A stretch of 64,000 nucleotides of DNA from Penicillus capitatus. Its lineage: Eukaryota > Plantae > Chlorophyta. Position 1 is the first letter of the stretch. Each line of letters opens with the position of its first letter. Where the stretch lies: contig OZ287702.1 in assembly GCA_965649825.1 (NCBI GenBank), positions 1,230,786 through 1,294,785 on the forward strand. The letters are read 5' to 3'. The position numbers were made by a program, and so were the translations under genes. The notes under the pieces were generated by a model, which had not been told where the DNA came from, did not search any database, and was given only the letters and a program-made list of their open reading frames with translations. This document shows, piece after piece, positions 1 through 36,600 of this stretch.

Positions 1-338
1 TTCTTCGGTTTGTCTTTCGGTTCGACGCGACTCTGCCAGCTCATAAGAGGCTCTTGGTTTAGAATGAAGTCGACACCCAGAAGGGCGTTAGTTTCGTCAC
101 GATGGCGTTCACTTAAAAACGGCTCGGTGAGCAATTTCTCGGCAAATACTAGAAAGTCCTCTGGTACCCTAATAGATCGAATTATTTCGACGCCATGTTT
201 TTGAGCCTCGTCAATTGCTCTCTGAAAGGCGTCGCCCCAAACTGCGTCGTTGAGGATCTTTTCGGCTAGCCAATCCACCGGAGGTTGAAATTTCCTACGG
301 ACTTTCGAATCTTCTACCACAGACGCGGCCGCCGCCAT
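1..338 (-). CDS. Hypothetical protein, 5' part, runs off the left edge
   Basis: ATG at 338 opens an uninterrupted frame MAAAASVVEDSKVRRKFQPPVDWLAEKILNDAVWGDAF...QSRVEPKDKPK to position 1. It is absent from the ORF track because it has no stop in the window. No family recognised. Confidence 0.5.
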   Translation of the reverse strand, partial: MAAAASVVEDSKVRRKFQPPVDWLAEKILNDAVWGDAFQRAIDEAQKHGVEIIRSIRVPEDFLVFAEKLLTEPFLSERHRDETNALLGVDFILNQEPLMSWQSRVEPKDKPK

Positions 339-3300
339 GCTTCAGAACAGCGTAGTTGAAAAGATAGGACGGTGAAAACGACGCCGGCGTCGAAGTTAAA
401 ACAGAAGTCCACGATCCGCAGACTAGCCGCAGACCGCCGGCGATGTAAGATGACACGCACAAAAAAACAAATGCGCTAATAACAGCTGTTCTGACGACAT
501 GTTGTGATTGTCTCTTCGCTTCACCTTCTTCTGCGTCCGCGGCGACGGGCCACACAACTGCTGAACTTGTCGTGCTGTCGCGTCACGATCCGTTCGCTCT
601 CCGTTCGCGACGACGGATGATGATGGGAACCGAGTTGCGAAGTCGGAAACACCTGAGATTCGTATTCGGAGTCGTCTCTTCTTTTCCCGAGGCAAGCTCG
701 AGAATGTGTTTATGTTGTCAAGAACGCAAACGGCGGCCCGGGGAACGAAATTTTACCTCTTACAACCGCGAGCTTGACTCCGAACTGCGTCGTTTTCTCA
801 TCTATCCCATTGAAGATCTCTGATCGGAGGTACTCCATTCAGCCAAAGTCTGCGCATTTCACAACGACAGGAGCAGCCAATCTTCTCAGCAGCGTCTTCC
901 ACAGGTCGCTTGACGGGGTCGAATTCTTTCGGTCGGGCGTCCACTGACGGCAACGCCTTGCCCCTCCACGTGTGGCGTTGAGAGCGCCATTACCCCGGAG
1001 GTTCACCAGTCTGACGGGGATACGTCGGACAGTGGCGCGACGCGGCCGCGCCAACGCGCGTGTGCGGAAGTGGAGGGACTGTGTAGAGTCAAAGCTAAGA
1101 CTGATTACATCGCGCGCCCAGTCAGCTTTATAGCCCTGGCGCCCGCGGACCGCTGTCATGTCAAGCAGCGGACAGCCTGTCCGGTCCGCTGGGCCGCGAC
1201 CGTTATCGCGTACCCGTCAGGGGGTTTCCTTGCCGAGGCGCCGGACTGTTAGAGCTGGCTCTGAGATGCGTTACACTTCTCACCGAAGTCCCAGAAAACA
1301 ACCTATCCAACACGTGCCGTTGCCAATCAAAGAGAGTCGATAGAAAATGAGGTATTCCTCGACGACATCTGAGGTCTTAACACGCAATGACGACACAAAG
1401 AATAGTCATGTGTATGCATCGCCATTTGAGCCGCGTTTTCAGTAGCTAAATCTGCGTGCCTATTCTACCATCACTAAAACCTTTGTGATACCAAGGCTGT
1501 CACGCTCTCGTTTTAATGACTGTCAATAGTTGGGGTTGTCACATTGTGTCTGCCTCGTTTCCAAGGGTCCTGTCTTCCAAGGTGCGCTCGTAAGGGGTTC
1601 ACGACTTCTCTCCATTCTACCGACCGTCGGAGTCGCTAACATTTGAGAAAGAGAGAAAGTATGTGAACTGGAAGCCATGTTGCACCGCTTATGGTGCGGA
1701 ACAATGGTCACAATGTCAAGGGCGGTGAAAGTGGTTCTGTGAGAACAAGATGCATAGCAATAGATCATGTAGAAAGCACGACGGTGGGCATACAGACCGT
1801 ATGCGAACACCGTTAGTGTGAAGAAAAAATGAGAGTTCAAGTGGACAGAACCAAATAGAACGAAGTGAGTTGATGGCCGTGAAATCGAAAACGAGTGTAC
1901 AAGTTTTGCGAGTCAGGCAGCAGAACGACAAAGGAGTGGAGACTAAAACGAACACGGAATAGATAGGAGCAATGACAGAAACGCCCACACTGGAAACGTG
2001 CCAAAGGTCGACGAGTAGAAGCGAAAGATGGCGAAATCATTCGATTCATTATTTCAAATCGGACAAAACCGAAAAAGCGGGACCTCCTCACATCGGCTTG
2101 CCATAGCACAGAAGCACTTTACGAACGTTTGCGTCAACACTGTCGGCTTTGCCGTGCAGAACTGCTTGAGGCGCCGCTGTCTGGTTGAGGGGGTGCCTGA
2201 TTCCCTCCCTCTTCTGGTTGACTGGGCGGACCTGCCTCTCCCACGAGTCCGTGTCGGTCTTCTTGAACGGAGCTACGTCGAAAATCGTACAGCTCGGCGT
2301 TATGGACCACCTGGTCGGCGCCCCGCTGGAATAGGTCGGTGGCGTCGATGCTTTGGCGCTCCCCTTCGCGAAAGAAACCGAGCGCCGCTAGAAATGGCGG
2401 ATTCCTGTACAACGGCGGATATGGAACGGTCGCGTGAGACACCGGGGGTTGTTCGTCGTCGTCTGCCAGGCTGACCGAAGTCTGATACCCAAACTGTAAA
2501 ACTGCTTACAAAGCGAAAGCTCCCCCCCCCAAACGTTCTTCCCCCATTTAAACCATCCGACCGATGTGACCCGAGAAGCTGATGACTCATCCATCGCCCA
2601 GAACCAGGGAACCAGAACCCCCCGCACCTGAGACCTTCGCTGACAAGACCCTGAGTGCCCCTTGGCGGCGTGCACCCATCGCCAGCCAGACAGTCCCCTC
2701 AATTGATTTACCCTCCCTCCGATCCATCATGACTCCGGGATGACGTCGTCCCATCACTATCTTGCCGACAAACACTCAGTCTCGCCCTCTTTGATATCAT
2801 TCGTGGGGCACAGTCGGTGATCGGAGATTATGCTCTTATTGTGGTTCGGTATCCTTTGCGCTTTACTTTCCACAATGTCGCTTCATCGGAATCTCCCGTC
2901 TAACTATTACGCACAAGCACTCGTCAAGAATAAATGTGGGAAAGCGGGTGGAAAGTTTCTCGGTGGTCAGTATTTAGTCGGCAAAACGCCTAGAAAAACA
3001 AACATCCTGTTCGACCGTAAGTACACTGTACACTGCCTCCCTCGAGAAATCACACGCAGATCGTTGTCTGACGTCTGCCGTCGCATCAGGATGTCTTTGT
3101 GCCAGATAGCTGTGCATTTTAAGCGAGAGTCGAAAATTCAAAAGGCCGTTGATCTGCTCTCGCTGTCCACTCATACATACACAACTCAGATGAATAGAGC
3201 TGCAGTCGGTCAGAATCATTTCTGTTTTCATTGATGGAAGCTCTCCCACAGAACGAATAGATCGTCATAGCAAAGAGTACTTTGTCTTCCATTCTACGCA

Positions 3301-3953
3301 AACAATGAGGTAAACGCAACGAGTTCTCGTAAGTTGCTGTTAGAAAAATGTCCCGCTCCTACTACTTACCCAAGATCTGGCAAAGCCGCGCAACAATCGA
3401 TGATTAGTAAGATGCGCAACCACTTTCTGAGACGGCGGACTTGAGCAAAACATTTGACGATTTTACGAGAGCTCGGGGATAACGACAATATTGAACGCTG
3501 AATTGCCTGTTAGAGTATCGAGCGGTAAGCCGATAACTGATAGGTCTTACAATTGATTCTTTAGGTTTATCACGCACTGTCACCACGAAGTTTATGACAT
3601 GTGCTTCTGCTTCCCGGAAAACATCCATAACAAGTTTATGTTTGAACTCGCCCCATCTTTGGCGACTGATGCGCGTTTCTGTGTTCCTGCTTTACAGAGC
3701 AGACAGAATCTTCAAAAATTGCTAATCAAATCGGAAACTTTGTTGAAAAGAAGCAACAATCAGTGCTTCGTACTGTATCCGATGGTGCCACCAGAGGCAT
3801 ACTTGAAGAGCATCTTCCGATGCTTTTTTTTTTTGAAAACAGCAATAGGTCAAGTCACAAGAAGGTCAGAATGCAATGGAGAACATTAATACGTCTACCC
3901 ACTGAACTACAGACAGGTTTGAAGAACTGAAGAGTCGTAAACAGGAAGAGAGA

Positions 3954-6900
3954 TCAGGACTCGATGGGGATGTCACACGCCTCTCCTGCGAAGCCAGTGA
4001 AGCACAGACACACGCCGTCCTTCAGGTTGCACACACCGCCTCCGTTGCAGTCCCCTGGACACGCCACTGGTGCATCGGCTGGCGGCACGAACTCGGGCTC
4101 GCAGCCCACGCCCGAGCACACTTTCAAGGTGCCGGCGCTGCTGAGTCCCATGACCTCTGGCTGGTCGCTGGCAAAGACGCGCGTGGGAGGCAGAGTGAAG
4201 TTGCCAACCGTGGCGGCCACGGCTCTCAGACTGACGCTGGTTGTTCCCGGACGGACCCTGTCGAAGGTGAAGGTCACGACCTGAGGCCTGGTCTCCTGCT
4301 GCGGACAGTTGAAGAAGAAGGAGCGGAAGAGACTGAAGAAGGGAACGGGGCAGAAGCCGCCTCCTGCGATGTTGGGATCCACGGGTTCCAGTCCGGCTGG
4401 CATCAGGACGCGGACGACCGTCTGTCCGAGCGCATCCGGCGTGAGGAACTGGACCTTGATCGAGACGACCGTTCCTCGGGGGACGACGGAGAGACCAGGC
4501 CCGTCGCCCTCCTCGGCGTCCTCCAGCTGGATGCTTCTCTCCACGAAGATGCCTCTGTAGGTCGGGAACGGCAGGAGCTCGGACGGAACGAAGTTGAGGG
4601 TGATCGCGACGCTGGCCTCGCCGCCGCCCACGGCCGACACCTGGATCGGCTCAGGCGCTTCTGGGAGTGCCTCCCACGGCACTCGGGAGGAGGCGACCGG
4701 CGCGGAGGCGTTGTTGAAGGAGGCCTCTAGCAGGGTCACGTTTCCGGAGACGGCCTCGAAGTCGAGGTTCGGCTGTGCGCTGCCGCGGGAGACGTCGAAC
4801 TCGACGAGCGCCTGCATCGTGATCAGTCGAGTGTAGGCGCTGAAGAGTCGGAAGCTGAAGGCGTCGGAGGCGGGACTGGCGATGTAGTCGCCCAGCCTCG
4901 GCAGCAGCTGTCCGTTGGTTCCGGCCCTGACCTGGGCGAGGAACACGAGCGCGTTCGCCAGGTCGCTTGCCGGAGCCGTGGCTCCGGGGAAAAGGGACAC
5001 GTAGGCGGTCCTGCCGGTGATCCGGAGCAGATCCGTCCACGTCTGGATGGCCAGAGCGACGTCCGGATTGGACGCGCCATCGGGCTCCTCCAGTCTGGCG
5101 AGGACGTAGTACGCCTGGCTCTCGATCGAGAGATTGGCGAACTCTCGGCTGAGGCGCTCCAGCGAGAGATCGTCGACGATGACGGCGTCGCCCGTCTCGG
5201 GCTGCCAGTCGGGACCGAGGGCGGCTCGACCCAGTGCCACGGTGGAGAGGGACAGGGGTCCTGAGATCGCTGCCCTGCGGGCCTCGACGGCGAGGTCTTC
5301 GAGCTCCGAGCCCGCGACGGACCTCCAGATGTCTCTGGCCTCCAAGAGGCTGCCTGAGCGGGACTGAACTTGCGGCAGTGTGTGTCCGACGAGCTGCTCC
5401 TCGACCTGGTTGAGCAGGAAGAGACCTCTGGCGTTCTGGAAGAACGACGGGTCATTTCTGACGGGATTCTCTGGGCACGGCAGGAAGGGTCGCAGTCCTG
5501 CTCTTCTGCTCGTGAGGCCGCCTCCGCGACTCAGCAGGTCGACGGCAGGGTCGAAGCTCTCCAGGACCAGTCCGATCAGGGAGGCGAGCTCCTCGCCCAC
5601 CACATCAGGCGACGGGTTCCACGGGTTGTAGGGATTGATGATTCCCGGAATTGTCGCCGCCGCCAGAGCGAAGTCGGCGTCCACGGGACACTCGAAGGGT
5701 CTGGGTACGCTAAGGATCTGCTCGGCCACGACCAGGACGGCTGGCTGGCGGCCCACTCCGGCGGTGATCAGGATCTCCCCGCTTCCGGGGACGGCGTCGG
5801 GTAGATCGATGCCCTCCACAAAGGTCTGCGTGTCCTGACCCTGGACTGTGAATGAGGTTCCGACTGTCACTGCTTCCTGCAGTCCCTCGATCTCGATCTC
5901 CAGCTGCAGAGCGTCGCTGTTGCCTAGGCCATCGTCGGCAGTCAGGGTGAAGTTGGCTGCTCCGACTGAGACGGCTCTCAGTGTGAAACGCGCTTCTTCT
6001 TGGCCATCGGCGCCGACATCGACGTTCATGACATTGCTGCCAATGAACTCCAGAGGACCATCCACGTCGGCAGTCAGGGAGACGGAAGCATTGGCGGAGC
6101 CGGAGACCGTCACCACGGCTCCTGCCTCGAAGACGTCGCCGGTGCGCACAAAACGGGGAACTGATGGTGTCAGGGAAACCTGTCTCCTCACGATGATCTC
6201 GGATTCGGCACTGCCAAAGAGGCCCCTGGCAGAGACAGCGTACGCTCGGACGACGAAGGTGCCCAGATTGGAAGGAGCAGTGAAGGTGGCCAGAAGAGTT
6301 CTATCCTCTGCTACACTGGTCTCGAAGAGCGGGGTGCTCACGAAGTCGGATTCCAATCGGAGATTGTTTGCAGGAGCGGAATCTTCGACAAGTGCGAATC
6401 CTTCTGAAGCAACGGCAACTGATTTAGCAGGTACAGGTGTCGAAATACGGGCAGAAGCAGATGGAGCACCATCATCTACCACCACAGCCGCCGACAAGGC
6501 GACAGTTTCTACTGCGCCCCCTTCAACTACAATTTGACCTCTTCCACCGAAACTGGGTGTAAAGAACCGAGAGAATTGAATTGTGATGAAGCGGCTCTCC
6601 GAGTCGATATACTCTTCTTCTGTCTGGTCGATTCTGAATCGGTCAGTCAGTCTGTTTGCCAGGAAAAACCAGGGATCCAGGCGACTGCGGCTGTTGTGGT
6701 AGTCAATCAGCGCTTGCAGTCCAGCAGGAGTGGTGATGAATCGACTCATCGACGTCGTAGACATGGAAGCGGACAGGTCCAGAAGGAAGCTGGATGAAAG
6801 ATCCACAAGCGGAAAAGGTACAAGATCCAGAATAGCTCTGTCGACGGCAATCAGCGTCACTTCTGTGCGCGTTGTGGTGTCGAGCTGCACTTCAATCGTT

Positions 6901-9900
6901 GTGTTGTCACCAGGACTCACAACAGCCACTCCTGCATCCTCGGCCGCCTCTGGAAAGGTGATGGTCACGTTCAGCTCTCTGGGAACACTGGGAACAACTG
7001 TGATGCGATCGTTGTACATTTCTGTGTGTGGAAGAGCCAGATCGAACAGTCTCGAAATGGGAACTGGTTCTTCTGTCGCTAATCCCTCTGTCTGCCTCGG
7101 CACTGCTATCACGATCGACAGTCCGCAATCAAACTCGCAGAACTCATCGACGTCGATGCTGATGACGGATCGACCGGAGTCTACAGGCGTCACCTTCTGC
7201 TTGATGCCTTCCACTGTTCCCCACGTGACGAGAGCATAACTGCCATCGAAAGGATTCTCCACCAGGATCCGCTTCTCTGATCCCAGATCCAGTTCCCCTT
7301 CTGCGAGGTCGGTGAAGCCAATGGGCAGGTGGGAGGAAAGGGGACTCTCATCCCAGCTTTCCTGTGTTCTTCCGAGGAAAATGCGTTGACAGACCGTCGC
7401 GCCTCCAGAAGTGGCACATGCTTCGATGGCGAACCGTCCAACGGACGGCAGGACAAAATCGCAGTAGTCTTCTGAGCCTGCATCCAAGCGCCTTAGTGAT
7501 TGGAAGCGTGAAGACAAGGAATCAGTTACCTATCTCAAATTCACAACTAGTGACGCTTGTGCCATTCAGAGGTCGATCACTCGTCCGGATGAAGTCGCTG
7601 TCTTCGTCTGGTAACTGGATCAGCTTAATCGTGACAGTTTCAAGTTGATTGTCTCCCTCGAGAGGTCGCCCTTGAAGGTCTGCGGCATCGACTGCGACTC
7701 CGAAAGTTTGGCCAGGAATGTTCGTCTGTACCGTCCTCCTCAGTGAGAGGCGGAGATCTGCTGCCTCGATGCGGACGCTGGCCGACTGTTCGATCAGCTC
7801 ACTGGTCGGTCCGACGAGTTGAAAATCGATAGAGACCCTGGACCCGACGTTAGGAAGAGGTTCAATCTGGGAGAGATCGATCACAGCAGTGCCGTTCCCA
7901 TTGTCGTCGGTCGTGATGGTCAGCTCCCCCTCTGCTGGTTCTTCTTCTTCGTCTCGGTTGAAGTCCACGAGCTCCCAATTCACTGCGATCTCGGATCCGC
8001 CCACTGCCGATCCAATGAAGGACTCCACGTTCACTTGAATCTCGATGTTTCCAGCTGGCGTGACGAAGAAAGGCGTGTCCACAGTGAGCTCGACCGTCGG
8101 CAGACGCGGGTCGCCAACCGTGAAGGAAACTGAGTCGCCTCTGATGCGACCGTCTGCAACGAAGTTGACTCTGTAGTTCCGCAGTTCAGCCTCAGGAGGG
8201 ATCGGAATCTCTGCTTCGTAGCTGCCGAATTCAGGATTGATCGTGACAGGGAAATCGCTGTTCTCGGCCAAAGGAGGTGAAACCTCGACCCTTGTCGAAG
8301 TAAGGCCTCTGGCGGGTACGAGTTCTCTCCCTTCCCTCTGCCAGACATATCCTGCAACACTTCACTAAGTAAGCAAGTGCACGTGACCAGTGCCGAGCGC
8401 CTACCCTTGACGCGAAGCACTTCATCGGGGCGGACCAATGCCCGATCCAGGACGATCCTGTCTTGGATACTCACGCCCTCGATGCTGCGGAAGAACACAT
8501 CTGGAACGTAGACAAACTTCGGTCCGATTTGCACGACTGCCACGATGTTATCCAGTGAGGTTCTGATTCCTTCCAACAAAGCGACGCCACTGGCATCCGT
8601 CTTGCCTTCTGCCAAAAGCTCCGCATCGGTCAGCTACACAGAAGAGATCGTTCCAGAAATGAATCATTCTAGGACGGATGCTTACAAGTGACCGTCCTCC
8701 AAAGAAGAACACTGTGGCGTTCGCAACGGGTTTTCCAGTTTCCATAGAGGTCACCCAAGCTGCTACCTCCTGTTCTGTCGACAACTGACTGTATGTCACA
8801 ACAGTAACTTGGATCGTCGTTTCCAGAATGACATCCGCTAGGAAGGATCGAAACCTGCCGTGCAACACAAGTGTCAGGGGAGTGGGAATTGTGAGACGCT
8901 CACCTGCAGAGTTCGAATGCCATGACTCCAGCAGGATCCAGCACGGAGGAAGCATCCCTTTCCTGCAGCACGGCGCCTGGCATCCTTGAGCCGACCAGCT
9001 GATCATCTAATCGACAATTAAGATCAGACAGTATGCATTGTGAGTGTGAGTTCACCTGGCGCTCCAAGGTAGCGCCTGTAAGATTCCCGAGTCCCGCCAC
9101 CTATGACAGGAAGAGCTTCTGCTGGCGAAGTGATGGACCAGATGTCGACGACGCTGCCGGTTGAGCAGACCCCATTGTCATTATTGTCCAGTCCTTTCGA
9201 AAAGGAAAGGACCTTTCTGCCCCAGTCCTGAGATGACTCGAAAACAGCGTATCTGGGGAATCTTCCAGTTGATAGTTTGCTGAAGTCTGCGTCGACGCCC
9301 CGTGTTCTAAATTCGAGGCTGGAAGCCTCAAGAGGCAGACCAAAGCCATCCACAACTCTGTCGGATGCTCCGACAGATACCCTGAGTACCGTGTTATGCA
9401 CAGGACGCCCCAAACAAAGAAAGGTACTCACGTGTATAGCTCACTTGGGCCGATCGCTGTTCTCAGACGCAGCACTGTCTTTTCCTCTTGTGTCAGATTG
9501 AAGGCTACCTGCACGCATCCCTTCGACTTGCCAGTAGTCGAAGGGGATTGACTCACTGTTTGGTTACTGCTGTCGACAAGTGTGATTGGAATGTCGGCGA
9601 TGTCGGTTCCGTCTGCCAGGCCGTGTGGAATGTACAGGTCCAGGAAGGGCGTTGTAATCCTATTGACTGAGCTTTCGGAAAACGGAACGACAAATCGACG
9701 CAGTCCTCCAAATGTCACTCTTAAATCGGCTCCCAGCTGTCCAGAGGCATTCCCATAGTCCACTCCTGCTCCAAGGAACAGGGCATACCTGAAACAGACG
9801 AGCTCAGCAATAGCGCTTTCTTCAGAAAGAGTGAGTATACTCGATTCCCATTCGAAGCTCGCCATTCAGAGTGACATTTGCGCATTGGGCTTCTCCGTTC

Positions 9901-10849
9901 ACTGGAGCTCTCCTTCTCAGGCAAGGATCCACCACAACACCGATGTCTGTTCCCTGTCCGCCGTCTGCCACAATCACCTACGGGAAACAACGTCCAGTCT
10001 CCGTTTGAGCGAAAGGTAAAGGGAGGCACCTCAAGTTCTTCCTGCAGAACGGAGAGGGAGACTGGGGCGTTGAACGACAGTTGTATGACGCCTAGAATCG
10101 CAACGCTTGAGGAAAGACCCATCTGGCAAACGGCGATTCAGACCATCCGGTGGCACTTCCGGCAAGATGTCCGTTCGCAGACCATTGAAGGGTGACCAGG
10201 CTGTGTCTGTCGCTTCATTGGCCGATTCACTCCTCACGTTCGCGATTTCCATTGTGAGTCCAGGTGTTGTCAAGATCACAGATTGAGGAATGTCCAGTGT
10301 CAATGGGACCCCTGTGTGGACAGAACCATCCAACCGAGACTGGGCGGATGAGAGCCACACCGTCGTAGGTTCGGAGTTGCAGATTCCATTTAAAGTTGAG
10401 GAGAAGGTCCGTCGCGAATGGTCCGTCTGGATCGAATCGGTAAATCGATGTCGTCACCCACCTGGAACGACCCGGAACTGGAGGGTCGAGTGTAAACGGA
10501 ACCTGTCACATCAAAATCACACTCTTTCAAATCCCGACTGCGGTGACTTACCAGCTCCGGAGGCAGTGTCTCGAATCCGAAATCCGAACCGAGAGCAATG
10601 ACAGGACGACTGAACACCACCTGCGAAGCGTCCTCCGTCACGAGGCACACCATAATCCTCGCTTACCGTAAGGGCTTGCTGTCCTTGAATCTCCACCGTC
10701 TCTTCTCTTGTTATTGCTGTAGGTGTGGTCGTCACGACTTCGAGCGGAATCTCGTCCGCCAGGAATCCGGCTGATGTTGTTTCTGCCGCGGGCGGTTGGC
10801 CTGCAACTGCCCAAAGGAGCACTGCATAACATATTGCTTTTATCCACAT
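3954..10849 (-). CDS. Bacterial-type alpha-2-macroglobulin-like secreted protein with C-terminal EGF-like domain (multi-exon)
   Basis: Signal peptide MWIKAICYAVLLWAVAG. Spliced N-terminal Ig-like exons (VVFSRPVIALG...DPPVPGRSRWVTTSIYRFDP). MG-domain text VGDPRLPTVELTV and VTLIAVDRAILDL. Post-bait motif SDFVSTPLF...FTAPSNLGTFVVRAYAVSARGLFGSAESEIIVRRQVSLTPSVPRFVRTGDVFEAG. C-terminal LMPAGLEPVDPN and AVAATVGNFTLPPTRV, then CPGDCNGGGVCNLKDGVCLCFTGFAGEAC. About a dozen short introns between 7.5 and 10.7 kb (e.g. 10621-10666, 10503-10551), and a single 3' exon of about 3.5 kb. Confidence 0.9.
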
Positions 10850-12067
10850 TTTCACCAAAAGGCGAGGAAAACAGAAGTGAAAGGTGTTCGTTCCTTCGTG
10901 GATTTAATTTCAGTCCAACTGTGAAAACGCGTGTGAACTTTTGAAAGCAGGACAGAATACGAGGCTGAAAATGAGAAGGAACATTTAGGTAAAACGTCGC
11001 ATCACAGATGTCCGCTCGCTGTCCGTAAACCGAGCGAACTTCCTAACCGCCGCGCCACAGGTCAGATCTCTCGCTTCGGTGGACTGTCCTCAATCGCGAA
11101 TCTGATTCTTTATGTACTAATATTCGTATCTGCGAAGAAGGGTACATACACCTCATGTGACGTCAATCATGGCACAAATGCGAATCTCAGACAGCGAATG
11201 CCGTTTGCCACATACATCTCGACGGTGTCTATTCACCACAGAAAATCACTTCAAAACGGACAGACACGTCGACAGAGCCTAGGAAGCTCAGCAAACCGTT
11301 GAGGTATGAATAGGTGTTTACACCCCTGACGGCGAGTCACCGAAATCCGATTACTAATTATTGCAGAGATGAAATGTGTGCACAGGATTATGCTCTCCTC
11401 GGTGCCGAAAGAGCATGCATACATTGCATCGAAGTCAGCAGTAGTTCGAAAGCCCAGAATTGACAGAAGGTGGTCAACGTCAATCGCCTAGATCTTTCGA
11501 GCCAAATGCGCCTTTAAAATGATCAAATCACCATATCAAAATCCTTCCGACGCCTGGAAGACTTGCTCGGGGTTCTAAAAGACGAAAAACAAAAGAGCCT
11601 CAATCGAGTACAATTTCAATCTTCTTCGCAGAAAAGAGCAATGTCGATTAGCTAACTGCAGGCAAACGATTAGAATCGAGTAACAGAGCGCAACACAATA
11701 ACAGGAGATCGATGTCTCGAGAGGACAGGACAATACCATCACAGTGTTTGCTCTGCACAGACTCTACATGAATTGTAAACAAACGACATCGTTTGCACGA
11801 TACACGCACTCTGTCTTAGCAAGCTACCTTCTGACGCTGCTAGTATGTACGTTGACCGTCAGTTGGTCGGTTTTCAATGAAGAACTATGAAGCTGAAACG
11901 GTAAACTTCTTACCGTGCTACGATAGATAGATGTGCCACGGATGACATCTACCTAACCGCAGTTCGCGATTAAAGCACGCTGCAATTCAGGATGACGAAC
12001 AAAGACGCACTTAAGAAGAGAAGCCAGAGACTTTCCTCTATCTTTTCGCTGTCTGCAGTTTCGCAGC

Positions 12068-17571: not shown

Positions 17572-18599
17572 AGGAAGACACACTTAACGTCGCTTCACTT
17601 CAGACGGAACGGTGACGTGACAATTAAACGACGTCTTTGACGTCGTGTTCGCTAATTCGTCTACGAAGCCATTTTCTCTCCGTAGTCGTCAACACAAATC
17701 GCGGATGATGACTATAATCGAGTCGCTCTTCTCTTTACTGATTCCCTCCTTCCGCTTGCACTGCTTAAACACTGACTGGTATCGTTGACGTGTTCTGTAA
17801 GCGATATAACGTTAACGGGCTTTTGGCAGCAACAGTTCACGATACGATGTGAAGCGATAACTGTATTTCGAAATAACAGCGACTCAAAAACCTTATGAAG
17901 CCAGTCACGCAAGCTAGAGCTTCAAGCAGACAGACGTGCATAAGCTAACTCGTCATGAAGGAATGCAAACGGTACTCAAGATAAGTTCGCAACCTTGAGG
18001 GCACAATCATCGTGGGAATCGTTATCTATCTCTAAAACGAAACTCGTCCAGAGGCTTTAACGAACAGCTGACGTTTACCAAGTTCAGTGACTCTTCTAAT
18101 AAGCAAACTTTGATGCTGAAAACTCTGTCTGGTATAAATATTAAACTTACACCATGACGGTAACCGACTTTTGATCCAGATCTCTCATTGCATGGCAGAA
18201 TTTCTTTCTCTGCGTGGCGTATGCATGGATCATCCTGAAATCGAAATTTGCACTTCAATTCCATGCAAATAACTTTGTTTAGACACGTATTTCGTTCGCT
18301 GAGAATCGCAAACACCGGATCTTCTAACTCTTACACTTCGCTCTATATGTCTTAGGTATTAAGGGCAATTTGAGTTCTTAAGATCTTTTAAAGCCGCTGT
18401 TCAGACTAATGTCGAAGTTCTTCGATTCTTTTCCTCGTACTGGTTTAGAAACGATGGTGTAAATGTCTCGTTCTTCGTCTAATGTTCACGTTTCATCATT
18501 CCGTTTGGACTTCGAAATGTCCAAAGTTCGTCAGTCCACTGTTAGAATCAAAATTACCAAACTATTTCCACGGAAATCCCGTTAATAAAAGATCGACTC

Positions 18600-19790
18600 T
18601 ATGGTTCTCGAACAACAAACCCACAGACTGTTAAATGCTCTTATGTCGCGTCCACTATTCGTAGGAATATGGGATGCAGATATTGCAAGACGGCGTTACA
18701 TGCATTACAAGTATCGTAAAATATCCTCTTTTGATTGCTCTCAAATAATCCAATCTATATACCATCTACAATATCAACAACTGATAAAAATCTCAAAACG
18801 ACTACTATCAAGATATTGAATGTTGTTTAAACAATCACAAGTATGTGCCATAGTCAAAACATAAAATCCGTTTGGCTGTAGATGTTACTCAATAAAACAG
18901 TGTAGAGAATGTAACGTTAGTTTTCATACAAACGACACCGCGTAGTTCTTTTTAAATAAAACATCAAGGCTGTCTGTTCTTACCAAGATGACAACAAATG
19001 GAGACAGAGAATATCCCATTGCTAGGCCTTTGACTTGTTCATAGTATGCAAATCCGCTTCTGGTCTTGGTCTTTGTGATGACACCGGCTAATGCGTATTA
19101 AAAAATCTTGATCAAGATCATTTGCCACTCTTTCTCTGGTATCCATCCTGCAAAGTCTATCAGGTATTTCTAGTCAAGAGTGGATTATCATTGACTCTCC
19201 ATCTTCAATAGCAAGCTACTGTATTGCGTCCCTTGCATGTGCTGTTTCCAGAATGTCGAAATCTAACGTCCATGGGAAGATAAATGTGCTAACTACTGAT
19301 TAATGGTTCTTGTTAATGTCGAAAACCTTGTACTAGTGGTCTGGTTGGTAGGTATTAAAGCTTTTTCTTAAGTATCTTGTGTACTTTGGGCATTGCATAC
19401 AGCTCCGCTGCAACGTCGAGCAGAAGAGGCTCCTAGCGGTCTGCAGGAACTACCATAAGCACCAATGTCTTCGGCTTCAGGAGCTTCCCAAACATGGAGA
19501 ACAAGTTTGAAAGCGCGCGCGGTCATCAATGGATGTTCGTTTGATTTTCTTCACGATCATCAACGCCATTCTGCCTTGTTCGCAGATGATTTGTCCGGCT
19601 TTTGTCGTTGACATAGGAAAACAAGTACCCGCGTCATGATGATCTCAGCAATCATTGCGTCGCAGTAGCTCTTGTGGATGGACACTAAGATAAGTATATC
19701 ACACTTTCTAGCGTTGTACACGCTTACACCGATAATCAGGCTCTTATTCATTGCGTACGCTGTAATTGTCCGTGATGGCAACGTTCACAG
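18600..19790 (-). mobile_element. Degenerate Penelope-like retroelement, reverse transcriptase remnant
   Basis: Minus-strand fragments are collinear with PLE RT motifs: NKSLII...LILVSIHKSY (about 19650-19750), LYAMPKVHK...PTRPLV (about 19340-19400; compare LYGLPKIHK..PlRPIV), YYEQVKGLAMGYSLSPF (about 18995-19050; compare FYEQxxGLAMGSPLSP) and IQYLD (about 18810-18825). Many stops and frameshifts, AT-rich. YxDD is not recognisable and no GIY-YIG domain was seen. Confidence 0.75.
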
Positions 19791-20685
19791 AAGGCACACT
19801 CGCTGCATATAGACCTTGGGTTAGGATTCTCTAAGGTATCTTGAACTACTTCTGTGTTCTTGGCTGCAAGAAAATTCCGCAAAACAAATGCGTACGTTCA
19901 AGTCAGACAGTGTTCTTGACGTTTGTCTTGGCATGGACATTCCACAAATATGAGATCATGAGGTTAGACGTAACGCTTACTCTGCGCCCAACAAGCTGCG
20001 ATATTTCTGATGAATCTTTTAAATTGATTGTATGAATGGGAAGGTATTTCGCCTTGTTAAAGAACGACCCTTAAGAAATCGATTTGTCTTGCAGTGTGTC
20101 GATCTTTACAGGCACGCGCAACTTATGATTGTTCTCCATAATGAGTCGCCAACGTCTAAAGGATTGTATAAAACGGCTTGGCAGAATAGGTGATGTTAAA
20201 GAAACCGCACAGACGCCATCATCGCCACTAAGAAGCCATCCCTCTACCAGCGATCCTTATCATACCCGACACACCTTTTATAGCATTCATTGTGAAGACC
20301 AACCCAGAGGTTGACGCTTATCACGAGAAATCTGTAGCAATAGTTGTGAAAAATTCCCTCCGACAGCCTCGCCCTCCAAGTCCCTTGGGAAGTGCTCGGC
20401 ATGGACACGTATCCCCCATCGCTTTGCACGGCGGGGGAGACAACGACGGGGAGAGTGAGTGCCTGAATCATCTCCAGGTTGGTTACTCTCACAAGCACAG
20501 CGGGAGTCTTGAGGTAAGATGATGATATTCAAGGATATCGGAGGCCACGCCAAAAGTTACAGCGATGAGACAGCTTGTTACGACGACGATAGACAGCGAG
20601 CGTTTTGACAAACAGAAACAGATTGTATGTGATTCACAGACACAAGTATAAACTCAGATGTCAAGCGTAAAAAGATTCATGTGCC

Positions 20686-23521: not shown

Positions 23522-24289
23522 TCATTGTAACGCTCTGTTCAGTAGCCCACGTAGTTTGATATTGTCAATATACCCGTCCATCTCACTCTTCGCAATCCAA
23601 GCGTGATCCACAAAATCAGAGTTCGGCAACAAGGTCGCTTGACCCGACAGCAGCTGCGCCTTCATGTAGAATTCCGTTCGCGCTCTCGCTCCTTCTTCAA
23701 AAGTGTAATGAGCTATTGGCCAATTCGCGATAAAGAAAACATCTGTCTTCGGTCCAATGCACTCCGCCAAGGCACGTTCGCCCGTTTTCCGAATCGTCTC
23801 TCCCGCGCTATGAAGGGTCGCCGGAAAGGACCATCCTCCTGAACGTGTCTTCACAATGAAGTAGAGATAACGATCCAAGAAACGCATCAATGACTTTGTA
23901 TCGCCTTCCTTGTCCGCTTGTGTAATGCGATCAAGTTCTTGCCATTCAGCACCTTCGTTCTGCTGCGCGTCTTCTTCCTCTTCCTCTTCCTCTATCAACT
24001 TTTTCTTTCTCTGCCACTCCTGTGGCAAATTCTGCTCTCTTTGTTCCCTCACCTGCTGAGACCACATTTGATACTCAATCTCCCAATCTTCAGGAAGAGG
24101 CCGCAGCAGTGGAGCGCGAGCAAGAATGCAAGATCCATGGATCGGCAGTTTGACGGCGTCGTTTTCCTTCGGGGCTTCAGGATTCGACGCAGATGTGAAA
24201 CACAGATGCCCAAAAAACCCGCGGCGCGATGACGGTAGAAGCAGGCGCGACAGAGAACGAAGACTCAGCGTCGTCGTCATTAGACACAT
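23522..24289 (-). CDS. MRPL46: Mitochondrial ribosomal protein mL46, intronless
   Basis: Ser/Arg-rich presequence, then RITQADKEGDTKSLMRFLDRYLYFIVK, WSFP...GETIRKTGERAL, VFFIANWPIAHY, FYMKAQLLSG and DHAWIAKSEM, typical of the mL46 Nudix-like fold. Confidence 0.88.
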   Translation of the reverse strand: MCLMTTTLSLRSLSRLLLPSSRRGFFGHLCFTSASNPEAPKENDAVKLPIHGSCILARAPLLRPLPEDWEIEYQMWSQQVREQREQNLPQEWQRKKKLIEEEEEEEDAQQNEGAEWQELDRITQADKEGDTKSLMRFLDRYLYFIVKTRSGGWSFPATLHSAGETIRKTGERALAECIGPKTDVFFIANWPIAHYTFEEGARARTEFYMKAQLLSGQATLLPNSDFVDHAWIAKSEMDGYIDNIKLRGLLNRALQ

Positions 24290-33665: not shown

Positions 33666-36600
33666 CTAGCTCAAATAAGGTACAACCCGTTGCAGTGGCA
33701 TGGTCACTTCTTCTAGCTTCTCTCCGACTGGAAGCTTCGCAAGAATTTCAAGCAAAAAACGACAGTCGGCCGAAAGCTGTTGTCTCTGATGATCCCTTGT
33801 CTCATCTGCCCCTGTCTCAGCTGCGTTCTCCAGTTCCCCGATATCTTCCAAAGGATGGCCACAACTTTCAGGACTCTCATTCACGCGCGGTGTTTGCTGA
33901 TCGTGAACGTCATCTTTGCAGAAGCCAAACTCCTGTATCATCTCCAAAAACGCCGATCCCAATTCTTCGCTGAAGATCTCGGCCACTCTCGTGCAGATCT
34001 CCGCCATCTGCTCTTCATGAAGTATGGGAGTCAGCACTTGCGTCAAAATCCGAAGCTGCTTAGCAATCTGTTGTGTGGCCTGAGATGGAGGACAAGCATC
34101 CGTTACTTCTTTAACTTTAACCGTCTTGGAATGCTTCACTTCTTCTTTGAGCTGACCGATTCCGACCAGGACTCTTTCCTTCATGATGCCAATCAGCTTG
34201 GAATGTATGCCATCTAGATGCATCAGCAGATCCTGTCAAGTTCACTCTCGCTCACGAACAAAGCGTGCTCTTTTCGGACACACCTGCTTGACTCTGTCAA
34301 ACTCTGGCTGCAAGATGGTCCTCTTCGCTTGCGGAGATCCTTCCAATAGGGCCTCCGTCATAAACGGGTGTAAATGAATCAAAAATAGGATAGACTGACT
34401 GCAGAGGGCCAAATGTTTGGCAGTAATGGACTTCAATCCACTCACCTGCATGGCCTGTCCACACACTGCCTTCGGGACAGTCGCATCACTGGGAAAGGCA
34501 GACCTGTGCCCCCAAGACCAACTGACAGCTTCTCTTGTTGAAGAAAGTGACAAGCTCCATGGTGTGTCGCGCACTGTCGGTTACAAATTCCGGAAAACAA
34601 CGGCTGTGACGGACGGCGGTGCACACCATCTCGGTCACAGACTGGCCAACCTTGACCAGACGGTACTCCATATCGTTCAGCAGGAACACAGATGCGTCCC
34701 TAGACACATGTCATTTCTGCAGCCATTCGTCAACAGAGGCGCACTCTTTCGTGGACGGCCTGACAGATCTATCCGGGAAAAGGGTTTCGGACACACGCCT
34801 CTGTATGTCTCCGTCTGCATCACACGGTTTCCAGTTTTCTTGCTCCAGAGAGGCATGCAGTTTCTTAAGACTCTCTCTGTGATGCCCGTCGAGTGTTGCT
34901 TTGCAGAGCGGTTGCAACATGGTCCCCAGTCGATGCACACTCTTGACCTCTGCTTCTGTCGCCAGCTCCTGGCATTTCTGATTCGCATCCATCAGCTCTT
35001 TAAGCTGATCTAGTCTAAGAGATTGGTGTATCTTGTCTCTTGACTGGAACACTCTTGCCCAGTGTGCATGACACGCGTCCACCAGGGCTTGACACAAATC
35101 CGATCTGCCTCTCTCGACAGTGGCTCGGTGTTGCAGAAGTTTGCCATCGTCCGTAGCCTCCAGAAGCAGTTCGCCCAAGGAACGATAGTGAGACAAACAG
35201 GAAGACGCGACCGACAGCAAGGCTGTGAGGAGAGAGAGGAACATATCGTGTGTCATGTTGCCCAAGTCGTCCAACGGAGATGGATCTTGAAGATTGTCTC
35301 CTGCGTTGGCAGTATCGTGGACAAAATTGGGCACCAGAATTTCCATGACGTTTCGCAGCAACGCCAACAAACGGGAAACGGCATGCGGTATCACTTCCGG
35401 AAAGATCTCTGTCAGGGATCCTGTTCGAGAGACGCCCAACAGAATCTGCTTGACCTTTTCTTTCTTGCCGCTCTCTTCTTCTTCTGTTCGCGAACGGAGA
35501 GGAGTTGCTAGACGGCCTGTCTCTCCGAGCGCTCTGGCAGCCACGGAACGAAGAATCGACTCGCCTTCATCCCAGTTCAGCAGTTCCAGCAATTCACCGA
35601 TCAGACATGCTCGTAAACTCACGGCAGATGCCTCGAGCGCCTCGGGCATGTTTTTCAGACAGTTCAGTTTTTCGACGGCTTTCGGCAACTCCCCGGCAGA
35701 GGATATGTCTTCATCGTACTGATGCTTTAGATTGTCGATGAGATCCAGCGCAGAGGGGTAGTCATGGGCCAGAAGCAAAAGATTCACCGCCTCCTGTGCA
35801 TGAGTCGCCATTTCGACGTTTTTGAGCACATCGAGTGTCGCCTCCAGATTTCGCCTCTTTCTGTGAAGCACTTGAATTTGCTCGGCTCGAGAACACATAC
35901 CGTTATCGATATCGTGTGCATGAATCTGCAGTCGTTGGATTTGAAACAGTGTATCCCCCATCGACTGCTGCAGCTCCTGAAGAGACTCAGCCGCCTCGAA
36001 GAAAGAATCCGAACGGGCGGCAATCTCGTTCAGCAACTCTGTCTCTACAATGTCCTGAAGGAGGACACCATCATCAAATGAAAAGCACACCATTCATCAT
36101 CCCGTACCAGAAAGGTGTTCAACGTCTCCAGCGTTAGATTGCGCTCTTCCTGCGTTTCTCCGCGAATCACTTGAGTGAACGTCTCCGGTCGGGTCAAAGA
36201 GAAGTCTTCCTGAAAATAAAGTGATGGGACTTGGCGCAATGCCTGTACTAAACCTTCGCCTCTCAAGTATCCAGACCCTGAAGCGCATGCCCCTGTGCGA
36301 TGCGATCCCGATCATCATCAAGGGAATCTCACTCACCCTCAGGGTCTGTTACACTGAGACGTCTGGCGTTGTCCTGCTGAAGGGACATGCGTCGGTGGAG
36401 GTATCTCTCCATCAATGTGCCCACTCTCATTCGGTACTCGTCGAAATGCGAGTACGACACTTCTCTGTGCAGACCACTGGGAGGAGGCGGTGCCGCTTCG
36501 GCCCATGCTTTGTCGACAGCAGAAGCCGGCCATGAGAGAATGCCGTAGCTTCCCGAGTTAGAACGATGCATCGCCGTAGGATTGTTGACAACCGGGACAA

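Follow-up and report, generated by a model that had tools for sequence, protein, structure and literature searches.

An alpha-2-macroglobulin-like gene without a thioester in a siphonous green alga belongs to an old eukaryotic family related to long bacterial A2Ms

On the minus strand of a 64,000-nucleotide stretch of Penicillus capitatus DNA (contig OZ287702.1; we call this whole stretch the window) lies a gene, at positions 3954-10849, that an initial annotation made from the DNA letters had described as a bacterial-type alpha-2-macroglobulin (A2M), acquired horizontally by an alga and afterwards furnished with introns and a C-terminal EGF domain. The locus raises two questions, namely what this gene descends from and what its product might do. 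Our preferred answer, to which we assign a probability of roughly 0.6, is that it encodes a member of an old, bacterial-derived family of A2M-like proteins without a thioester, acting outside the cell as a non-covalent bait and trap, or guard, against proteases. The parts of this answer differ in strength: we are highly confident of the identity of the protein and of its evolutionary placement, while the trapping mechanism is tentative and in our judgment falls somewhat short of an even chance.

Our splice model came from aligning the window with Caulerpa lentillifera P0003, the closest full-length homolog, and choosing the GT-AG junctions that gave the best protein alignment. It comprises 14 exons and 13 introns, which together give a single open frame (coding sequence of 6243 nt) for a 2080-residue product; the gene span in the initial annotation was exact, with the first ATG at 10849 and the stop codon at 3954-3956. 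Its estimate of about a dozen spliceosomal introns was likewise close, as all 13 are GT-AG introns of 46-53 nt, and two related loci (L001 and L002), both present in public metagenome assemblies, keep every one of them at the same position with GT-AG ends. Intron lengths in L001 and L002 differ by 1-5 nt, never by a multiple of 3, while the exons remain in frame, which supports the intron model. Under the same exon model L002 encodes an intact 2080-residue protein, and its introns are less conserved relative to the window than its exons. One 48-nt intron (9509-9556, GTGAGT...CAG) is stop-free and in frame, and was called because its 16 residues are missing from homologs; gene callers based on open reading frames (ORFs) would read straight through it. 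The motifs quoted in the initial annotation are all present, PSNLGTFVVRAYAV at 6234-6275, PRFVRTGDVFEAG at 6120-6158 and MPAGLEPVDP at 4374-4403, and the N-terminus, MWIKAICYAVLLWAVAG followed by Q, reads by inspection as the putative signal peptide it had been taken for, with no lipobox cysteine after the hydrophobic segment.

Because the 3' 2.2 kb of the gene is far GC-richer than its surroundings (63-68% against about 50%) and the related copy L001 is frameshifted, we considered whether the locus might be bacterial contamination, a mis-assembly or a dead pseudogene. This reading is refuted. The 13 spliceosomal introns are conserved in three loci, there are eukaryotic genes on both sides (neighboring ORFs match the MRP-L46, PI4-kinase and Vps54-like families), and collinearity between L002 and the window continues downstream of the gene, from which we take L002 to be the ortholog in a related taxon. 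The ORF is intact, it is the third codon positions of a single uninterrupted exon that carry the rise in GC, and comparison with L002 gives a dN/dS of 0.17, indicating purifying selection. Given the conserved introns, the dN/dS value, the synteny with L002 and the eukaryotic neighbors, the gene is a functional one in the nuclear genome of a siphonous green alga (Bryopsidales).

The features of the encoded protein on which the identification depends are as follows (MG, macroglobulin; pLDDT, predicted local distance difference test from AlphaFold2, AF2; fragment residues are those of the modeled C-terminal fragment).

6822-7166, minus strand: bait-region domain (A2M_BRD), residues 1011-1125, Pfam E = 4e-8
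6348-6671, minus strand: disordered, hypervariable loop at the bait position, AF2 pLDDT 24-47 over fragment residues 269-376
6342-6359, minus strand: RLESDFVSTPLF motif directly downstream of the loop, counterpart of the animal R-x-x-FPETW
6075-6308, minus strand: A2M domain (MG7, PF00207), residues 1297-1374, E = 4.7e-9, holding PSNLGTFVVRAYAV and PRFVRTGDVFEAG
4788-5747, minus strand: helical thioester-type domain without a thioester, AF2 helices at fragment residues 577-896, pLDDT mostly above 90
4155-4553, minus strand: bMG10 (PF17973; bacterial-type MG10, receptor-binding-like), residues 1882-2014, E = 4e-16, holding MPAGLEPVDP
3969-4061, minus strand: C-terminal EGF-like module with six cysteines, residues 2046-2076, Pfam EGF_Teneurin E = 3.5e-6

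Hidden Markov model searches of the spliced protein, which the initial annotation had proposed as a check, therefore matched A2M, A2M_BRD, bMG10 and EGF, the bMG10 match lying above its Pfam cut-off and additional matches to bMG3 and MG2 lying below theirs; the EGF-like tail sits where it had been placed. There was no Pfam match in the spliced protein to the animal-type A2M_recep (PF07677) or to TED_complement. A search of the full protein against PDB with phmmer gave spurious or EGF matches only; with a sequence profile the only solved structures reached were those of E. coli and Salmonella YfhM, with no animal PDB chain at E ≤ 1.

Structure prediction pointed the same way. Modeled with AF2, the last 1173 residues (pLDDT 77.9, predicted template-modeling score 0.66) run from beta-sandwich domains through a 108-residue disordered stretch to further beta domains, a helical domain, a C-terminal beta-sandwich and a small EGF. 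Foldseek searches of PDB with this model placed E. coli A2M (ECAM, 5a42; E = 9e-36) and Salmonella A2M (4u48) on top, followed by CD109, A2ML1, frog A2M, C5 and TEP1, and the alignments to A2M-family chains covered about 1150-1300 columns, nearly the whole model, with the helical domain aligning to the thioester domain (TED) of ECAM, A2M and C3. The N-terminal half was modeled by proxy from the Caulerpa ortholog, which is about 51% identical over that half; this model is all-beta (pLDDT 79.7) and its top matches were once more ECAM and Salmonella A2M (E about 1e-25), the C3 and C5 beta chains reaching about 1e-17. As modeled, then, the protein is predicted to have the array of macroglobulin beta-sandwiches and the helical thioester-type (alpha/alpha toroid) domain of the A2M/thioester-protein (TEP) superfamily, and, as read from its sequence, it appears to have the complete architecture of a long-form bacterial A2M with a putative signal peptide and a terminal EGF added.

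Across the A2M superfamily the position of the disordered loop is occupied by the bait region or the anaphylatoxin domain, and the RLESDFVSTPLF motif that follows it aligns with R-x-x-F-x-x-T-A-x-F of bacterial A2Ms and with R-x-x-FPETW of A2M and CD109. The loop is the most variable part of the gene, with identity to L001 and L002 of 65-80% with indels (300-nt windows, 6278-6877) against 85-100% nucleotide identity for the rest of exon 14, and its length and sequence vary among algal homologs. At the thioester site (5673-5696) the window protein reads PFECPVDAD in place of GCxEQ. None of the 27 eukaryotic members shown in our alignment has GCxEQ, and a motif scan agreed; (G)CxEQ is present in P0088, a Chloroflexota protein, and in 11 of the 13 bacterial relatives shown, P0009 and P0049 being those without it. 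From these sequences the eukaryotic family appears to be thioester-less throughout, and we file the window protein as a thioester-less member of a superfamily in which GCxEQ is not universal, C5 being another protein without it. The initial label of thioester-protein family member accordingly stands for the architecture and fails for the thioester motif.

The closest named relative is from Caulerpa lentillifera (56% protein identity). An initial search returned a few green-algal proteins (Bryopsis, Haematococcus, Tetrabaena and Monoraphidium) and then distant bacterial A2Ms. An exhaustive search of 1.84 billion cluster representatives, with a profile from an alignment of four algal C-terminal regions, found 6340 matches, 555 of them at E < 1e-30; the best 150 of these 555 all scored at least 243 bits, and the best bacterial sequence scored about 160 bits. 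The members identified comprise green algae (Bryopsis with at least four paralogs, Ostreobium, Caulerpa with two, Gonium, Chlamydomonas sp. UWO241 and Edaphochlamys), glaucophytes (Cyanophora, Gloeochaete), Amoebozoa (Dictyostelium purpureum, Tieghemostelium, Pyxidicula, Clydonella), Ichthyosporea (Ichthyophonus, Creolimax), the dinoflagellates Biecheleria and Polarella, the apicomplexan Digyalum, the stramenopile Platysulcus and the diplonemid Artemidia, so that the family spans at least four eukaryotic supergroups. Most of these proteins share, after the signal peptide, an N-terminal motif FL-x-(D/E)-E-(L/I)-P-L, which in the window protein reads GFLADEIPLEV. The gene model of the second Caulerpa paralog (P0005, C. 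lentillifera g8639) jumps from the region of the thioester site to MG10 without a TED-like region, which may reflect a true loss of the domain or a mistake in the annotation.

A neighbor-joining (NJ) tree of 107 sequences over 888 columns (100 replicates, support by bipartition counting; a 36-sequence protein alignment served for the comparison of bacterial and eukaryotic proteins) recovered one eukaryote clade in 100/100 replicates, nested among bacterial sequences. Within it lay a green-algal clade of 26 sequences (95/100) and a Bryopsidales clade (100), with the window protein, L002 and Caulerpa grouping together at 100. A second tree, to which the C-terminal regions of human A2M, A2ML1 and CD109 were added (40 replicates), again gave a monophyletic eukaryote clade (40/40) and separated the long bacterial A2Ms plus the eukaryote clade from the human proteins plus Chloroflexota, also in 40/40. 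A profile of the eukaryotic N-terminal regions matched the N-termini of long bacterial A2Ms collinearly, with E-values down to 5e-11 (Z = 1e6), which argues that the homology with long bacterial A2Ms extends along the full length. The claim of a bacterial rather than an animal layout is thereby upheld, by bMG10, by the missing A2M_recep and TED_complement, by the profile match to YfhM, by the Foldseek ranks and by the phylogeny, in which the long bacterial A2Ms and not human A2M, A2ML1 or CD109 are the company of the protein.

During the choice of outgroups we rejected P0088 as an animal-type sequence, as it is a Chloroflexota protein with metazoan-type domains. Together with P0251-P0369 it represents a large Chloroflexota/SAR202 group with the metazoan-type set (A2M_recep, TED_complement, GCGEQ) that resembles human A2M to a striking degree (E = 9e-107 over 700 residues) and in the tree lies much nearer to animals than to other bacterial A2Ms; these proteins bear on the direction of A2M transfer between animals and bacteria.

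The trees also bear on how the gene reached the alga. Transfer of a bacterial A2M into a green alga, or into the green-algal lineage only, followed by gain of introns and the EGF, would agree with the bacterial identity of the closest non-eukaryotic relatives, the matches to bacterial-specific Pfam models and the nesting of the eukaryote clade among bacterial sequences. What it does not accommodate is the single clade (100/100) that unites the algal proteins with relatives in glaucophytes, Amoebozoa, Ichthyosporea, alveolates, a stramenopile and a diplonemid, and these non-green members are unlikely to be green-algal contaminants, since the genome-derived genes of Dictyostelium, Tieghemostelium and Polarella form clades of their own. 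We regard this scenario as largely refuted and very improbable. A bacterial origin of the clade is plausible from its nesting, and that part of the earlier claim survives; acquisition in an alga does not, as the green-algal clade lies within a clade of several supergroups.

The intron positions argue against the same scenario. The exons of the gene are as follows.

10667-10849, minus strand: exon 1, with the putative signal peptide at 10799-10849 (MWIKAICYAVLLWAVAG) and the start of the conserved N-terminal domain (GFLADEIPLEV...)
10552-10620, minus strand: exon 2, 100% identical to L001
10361-10502, minus strand: exon 3
10144-10311, minus strand: exon 4
10030-10091, minus strand: exon 5
9841-9977, minus strand: exon 6
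9557-9788, minus strand: exon 7, followed by the in-frame intron 9509-9556
9432-9508, minus strand: exon 8
9056-9381, minus strand: exon 9
8904-9006, minus strand: exon 10, from frame inspection, PAGVMAFELCR aligning with Caulerpa PSGVIATQYCR
8686-8854, minus strand: exon 11, beginning a bMG3-like domain (8565-8778, across intron 11)
8405-8633, minus strand: exon 12, beginning an MG2-like domain (8119-8456, across intron 12)
7530-8351, minus strand: exon 13, macroglobulin-type beta-sandwich domains
3954-7477, minus strand: exon 14, 3.5 kb, intron-free, GC at third codon positions (GC3) up to 0.85

We mapped the introns of a Bryopsis paralog, which has 28, and of the chlorophycean Edaphochlamys gene, which has 51. 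Twelve of the 13 window introns are at positions common to Bryopsis, eight at positions common to Edaphochlamys, and each has a counterpart in one or both of these genes, which places the window introns before the split of Ulvophyceae and Chlorophyceae rather than after an acquisition by the alga. If anything the window lineage has lost introns: the region equivalent to exon 14 has 11 in Bryopsis and about 28 in Edaphochlamys, two at common positions, and none in the window. Loss of introns from the 3' end is classically ascribed to recombination with a partial cDNA. The introns that are left, all within 7478-10666, are tiny compared with their orthologs in Bryopsis (83-859 nt), and the source genome appears to be one with minimal-length introns. 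The GC-rich last 2.2 kb of the gene coincides with the intron-less part (exon 14, especially 3954-6200), and GC3 rises from 0.5-0.6 over the 5' two-thirds of the coding sequence to 0.72-0.85 in those last 2.2 kb; GC-biased gene conversion or cDNA-mediated replacement of the 3' part could lie behind both the GC3 gradient and the missing introns.

The EGF tail proved no more an algal novelty than the introns. It is present in 25 of the 26 green-algal members, and an EGF-like module also follows MG10, itself followed by a hydrophobic anchor, in Cyanophora, Platysulcus and several dinoflagellate-like sequences, from which we conclude that it is a eukaryotic addition older than the green algae; amoebozoan and ichthyosporean members have a transmembrane tail and no EGF. 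The window protein ends four residues past the EGF (2077-2080, IES-stop), with no hydrophobic tail or membrane anchor. Judging from these C-termini, what is peculiar to green algae is the missing anchor and not the EGF.

How the family came to be so patchily distributed is a separate matter. Repeated transfers between eukaryotes, or several from bacteria to eukaryotes, would be an alternative to one acquisition followed by vertical descent and losses, and would suit the fact that land plants, animals and fungi were not seen among the members named. The deep branches within the eukaryote clade of the NJ tree are without resolution, and glaucophytes fall apart from the green algae, which would also suit it. 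The single eukaryote clade at 100/100 speaks for one acquisition, as do the lineage clades within it that follow taxonomy (green algae, Bryopsidales, dictyostelids, ichthyosporeans and dinoflagellates) and the intron positions held in common across the Ulvophyceae-Chlorophyceae divide, and we therefore think repeated transfer unlikely. Most likely a long bacterial A2M was acquired once, in the distant past, and the whole family descends from it.

Among known systems the long bacterial A2Ms (COG2373 or 'YfaS-like', 1900-2100 residues with Big_5 N-terminal domains; P0009-P0087, for example from metagenome bins of Myxococcota, Bradymonadaceae and Burkholderiales) are the closest non-eukaryotic relatives. 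They are of similar length to the algal protein and align with it collinearly, N-terminal domain through MG10, and the Big_5-type N-terminal extension is common to both according to profile and alignment consensus; they differ in that most keep CxEQ, none has an EGF or eukaryotic anchor, and they reach at most 160 bits against the family profile where eukaryotes score at least 243. ECAM (YfhM) and Salmonella A2M (5a42, 4ziq, 4rtd, 4u48) have the same domain order (MG array, BRD, bait, MG7, TED, MG10) and a bacterial-type MG10. ECAM, however, is a periplasmic lipoprotein of about 1650 residues that traps proteases covalently through a CLEQ thioester, whereas the window protein, with only 14-16% sequence identity to it, has 2080 residues, with extra N-terminal domains, introns, a putative eukaryotic signal peptide and an EGF tail but no thioester. 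Animal thioester proteins (A2M, A2ML1, CD109, C3/C4/C5, TEP1) share the superfamily fold (Foldseek E from 1e-27 to 1e-34) and have a bait or anaphylatoxin region at the same position, and CD109 is membrane-anchored like many non-green members of the family; the window protein nonetheless falls on the opposite side of the 40/40 split and has none of A2M_recep, TED_complement and GCGEQ. Pseudomonas MagD and E. coli YfaS have the A2M architecture without CxEQ, belong to a multi-gene membrane complex (the mag operon) and are presumed to have a non-covalent, protease-related role in the envelope; partners of that kind were not seen here, no search having been aimed at them, and the eukaryote clade seems to have lost its thioester independently. 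As the window gene has spliceosomal introns, eukaryotic neighbors in place of a bacterial pbpC- or mag-type operon and, by eye, no lipobox cysteine, it is by descent a eukaryotic derivative and not a bacterial gene.

Part of the family had very probably been met before. Elias and Novotny (2008) reported COG2373-like proteins in Dictyostelium, one with an inserted cpRAS GTPase domain, and with only the Dictyostelium sequences at hand proposed a transfer from prokaryotes to that lineage (PMC2430557). Since members from D. purpureum and Tieghemostelium fall within our clade, those proteins very probably belong to the same eukaryotic family, the window protein being without the cpRAS insert. In the A2ML1 structure paper, three A2M-family proteins of Mamiellales (Micromonas, Bathycoccus, Pycnococcus) were found with animal A2M queries and read as probable transfers from metazoans (PMC9156758); they were not among the retrieved relatives of the window gene, with which no direct comparison was made, and appear to be a separate family. 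These two reports were all that our literature searches on the family in algae or protists turned up, with no paper that treats the family as a whole, and databases label some members automatically (e.g., Polarella, 'Bacterial alpha-2-macroglobulin MG10 domain-containing protein'). The family is in this sense essentially undescribed, and the window gene is an ordinary member of it. We also set aside an identity with the cage protein of the CAGE complex, which by its description is a cytoplasmic homotetramer of about 2300 residues per chain with no Pfam domains (bioRxiv 10.1101/2025.09.22.677704), the window protein having Pfam A2M-family domains and a putative signal peptide; this judgment goes by the published description, with no direct comparison of the two sequences.

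With regard to function, we propose the following course of events. The scaffold lost its thioester at the base of the eukaryotic family, and in many lineages it has a C-terminal membrane anchor, green algae having kept the EGF without the anchor. In the alga the protein, to go by its sequence-read secretion signal, would be exported to the wall or medium, where its loop may be cut by foreign or wound-released proteases; the macroglobulin ring could then rearrange and hold the protease, or shield it sterically, with no covalent bond. It would in this way serve as a cell-surface or wound guard, as has been proposed for bacterial A2Ms without a thioester, and by analogy such a role would fit the membrane association that recurs in the superfamily, in bacterial lipoproteins, in CD109 with its glycosylphosphatidylinositol anchor and in the anchored protist members.

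Several points weigh against this proposal and its evolutionary frame. The function of all members is inferred from architecture alone, and the signal peptide was judged by eye only. In the bait-like loop dN and dS are both raised and omega is 0.18, so that positive selection, for which we tested this loop, was not found there. Monomeric inhibitors of the A2M family are reported to need covalent capture by the thioester (PMC9156758), and for this reason a thioester-less monomer may not trap proteases unless it is oligomeric. On the evolutionary side, the bacterial sister group of the eukaryote clade has a support of only 55%, the trees are NJ trees with a simple distance correction in which distances to animal sequences are saturated, and some 'eukaryotic' members come from transcriptomes and could be prey or contaminant sequences.

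The reported dependence of monomeric inhibitors on the thioester, its loss across the whole clade and a loop omega that does not exceed 1 favor a different function for the same protein, in which it traps no protease and is instead a structural, adhesive or ligand-binding part of the wall or matrix, or in other lineages a surface receptor, with the EGF serving protein contacts; a membrane anchor and an EGF module are what one typically finds on adhesion or receptor proteins of the cell surface. A purely structural role is hard to square with the retention of the full A2M domain set, on which purifying selection acts; this set includes the BRD, a TED-like domain with a confident fold and, exactly at the bait position, a long loop. 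MagD and YfaS, moreover, are still considered protease-related without a thioester. We hold the structural alternative possible, if clearly the less probable of the two beside the preferred protease guard.

A bolder version of the protease-guard reading, which we offer as speculation and think rather unlikely as a whole, makes the family a third, hitherto unrecognized branch of the A2M superfamily. It would go back to one bacterial acquisition near the base of eukaryotes, ancestrally membrane-anchored and thioester-less, with later losses in animals, fungi and land plants; siphonous algae, in contrast, would have kept it, and there it would have multiplied into a secreted layer of protease sensing or trapping, divergent in its bait loops, that takes part in defense or the wound response. 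The copies counted in these algae are at least four to five in Bryopsis, two in Caulerpa and an apparent paralog of the window gene, and siphonous green algae are giant single cells that must survive wounding.

A 2026 review places A2M in metazoans and Gram-negative bacteria (PMC12939704), and in work cited in PMC9156758 bacterial A2Ms are generally held to have come from animals by horizontal transfer. The family described here changes this picture. It adds a second, independent eukaryotic lineage of the superfamily and bears on the direction and age of exchanges between bacteria and eukaryotes. Dictyostelium, and Bryopsis with RNA interference, offer tractable hosts for asking what an A2M scaffold does without a thioester, and the protein is a candidate extracellular defense or wound protein in an algal group known for wound healing.

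The two related loci and the surroundings of the gene yielded some further observations. Similarity between the window (3789-11004) and L001 (5409-12648) is a mosaic with flanks that have none: exons 1-5 are mostly 100% identical (97% for exon 3) and their introns 88-100%, identity falls to 81-89% in the middle of the gene, and it returns to 93-100% over the last 2.6 kb at the 3' end. When the shared exon model is applied to L001, the reading frame is shifted and meets stops from about residue 1266 onward. L001 looks like a paralogous or translocated copy that exchanges sequence by gene conversion, and is possibly a pseudogene. In L002, retrotransposon ORFs (RVT_1, integrase, aspartic protease; 1-6522) lie immediately upstream of the gene; the window does not have them. 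No match was obtained in an NCBIfam scan of the large ORFs of the window or in an Rfam scan of the window. The neighboring ORF fragments are the following.

23522-24289: MRP-L46
26071-29203: PI4-kinase, N-terminal region
34711-36093: Vps54/Vps53/Sec15-like N-terminal domain

The PI4-kinase gene, which is split over overlapping ORFs, probably also has short introns. The GC minimum of the window lies at 18001-20000 (0.41 against about 0.50).

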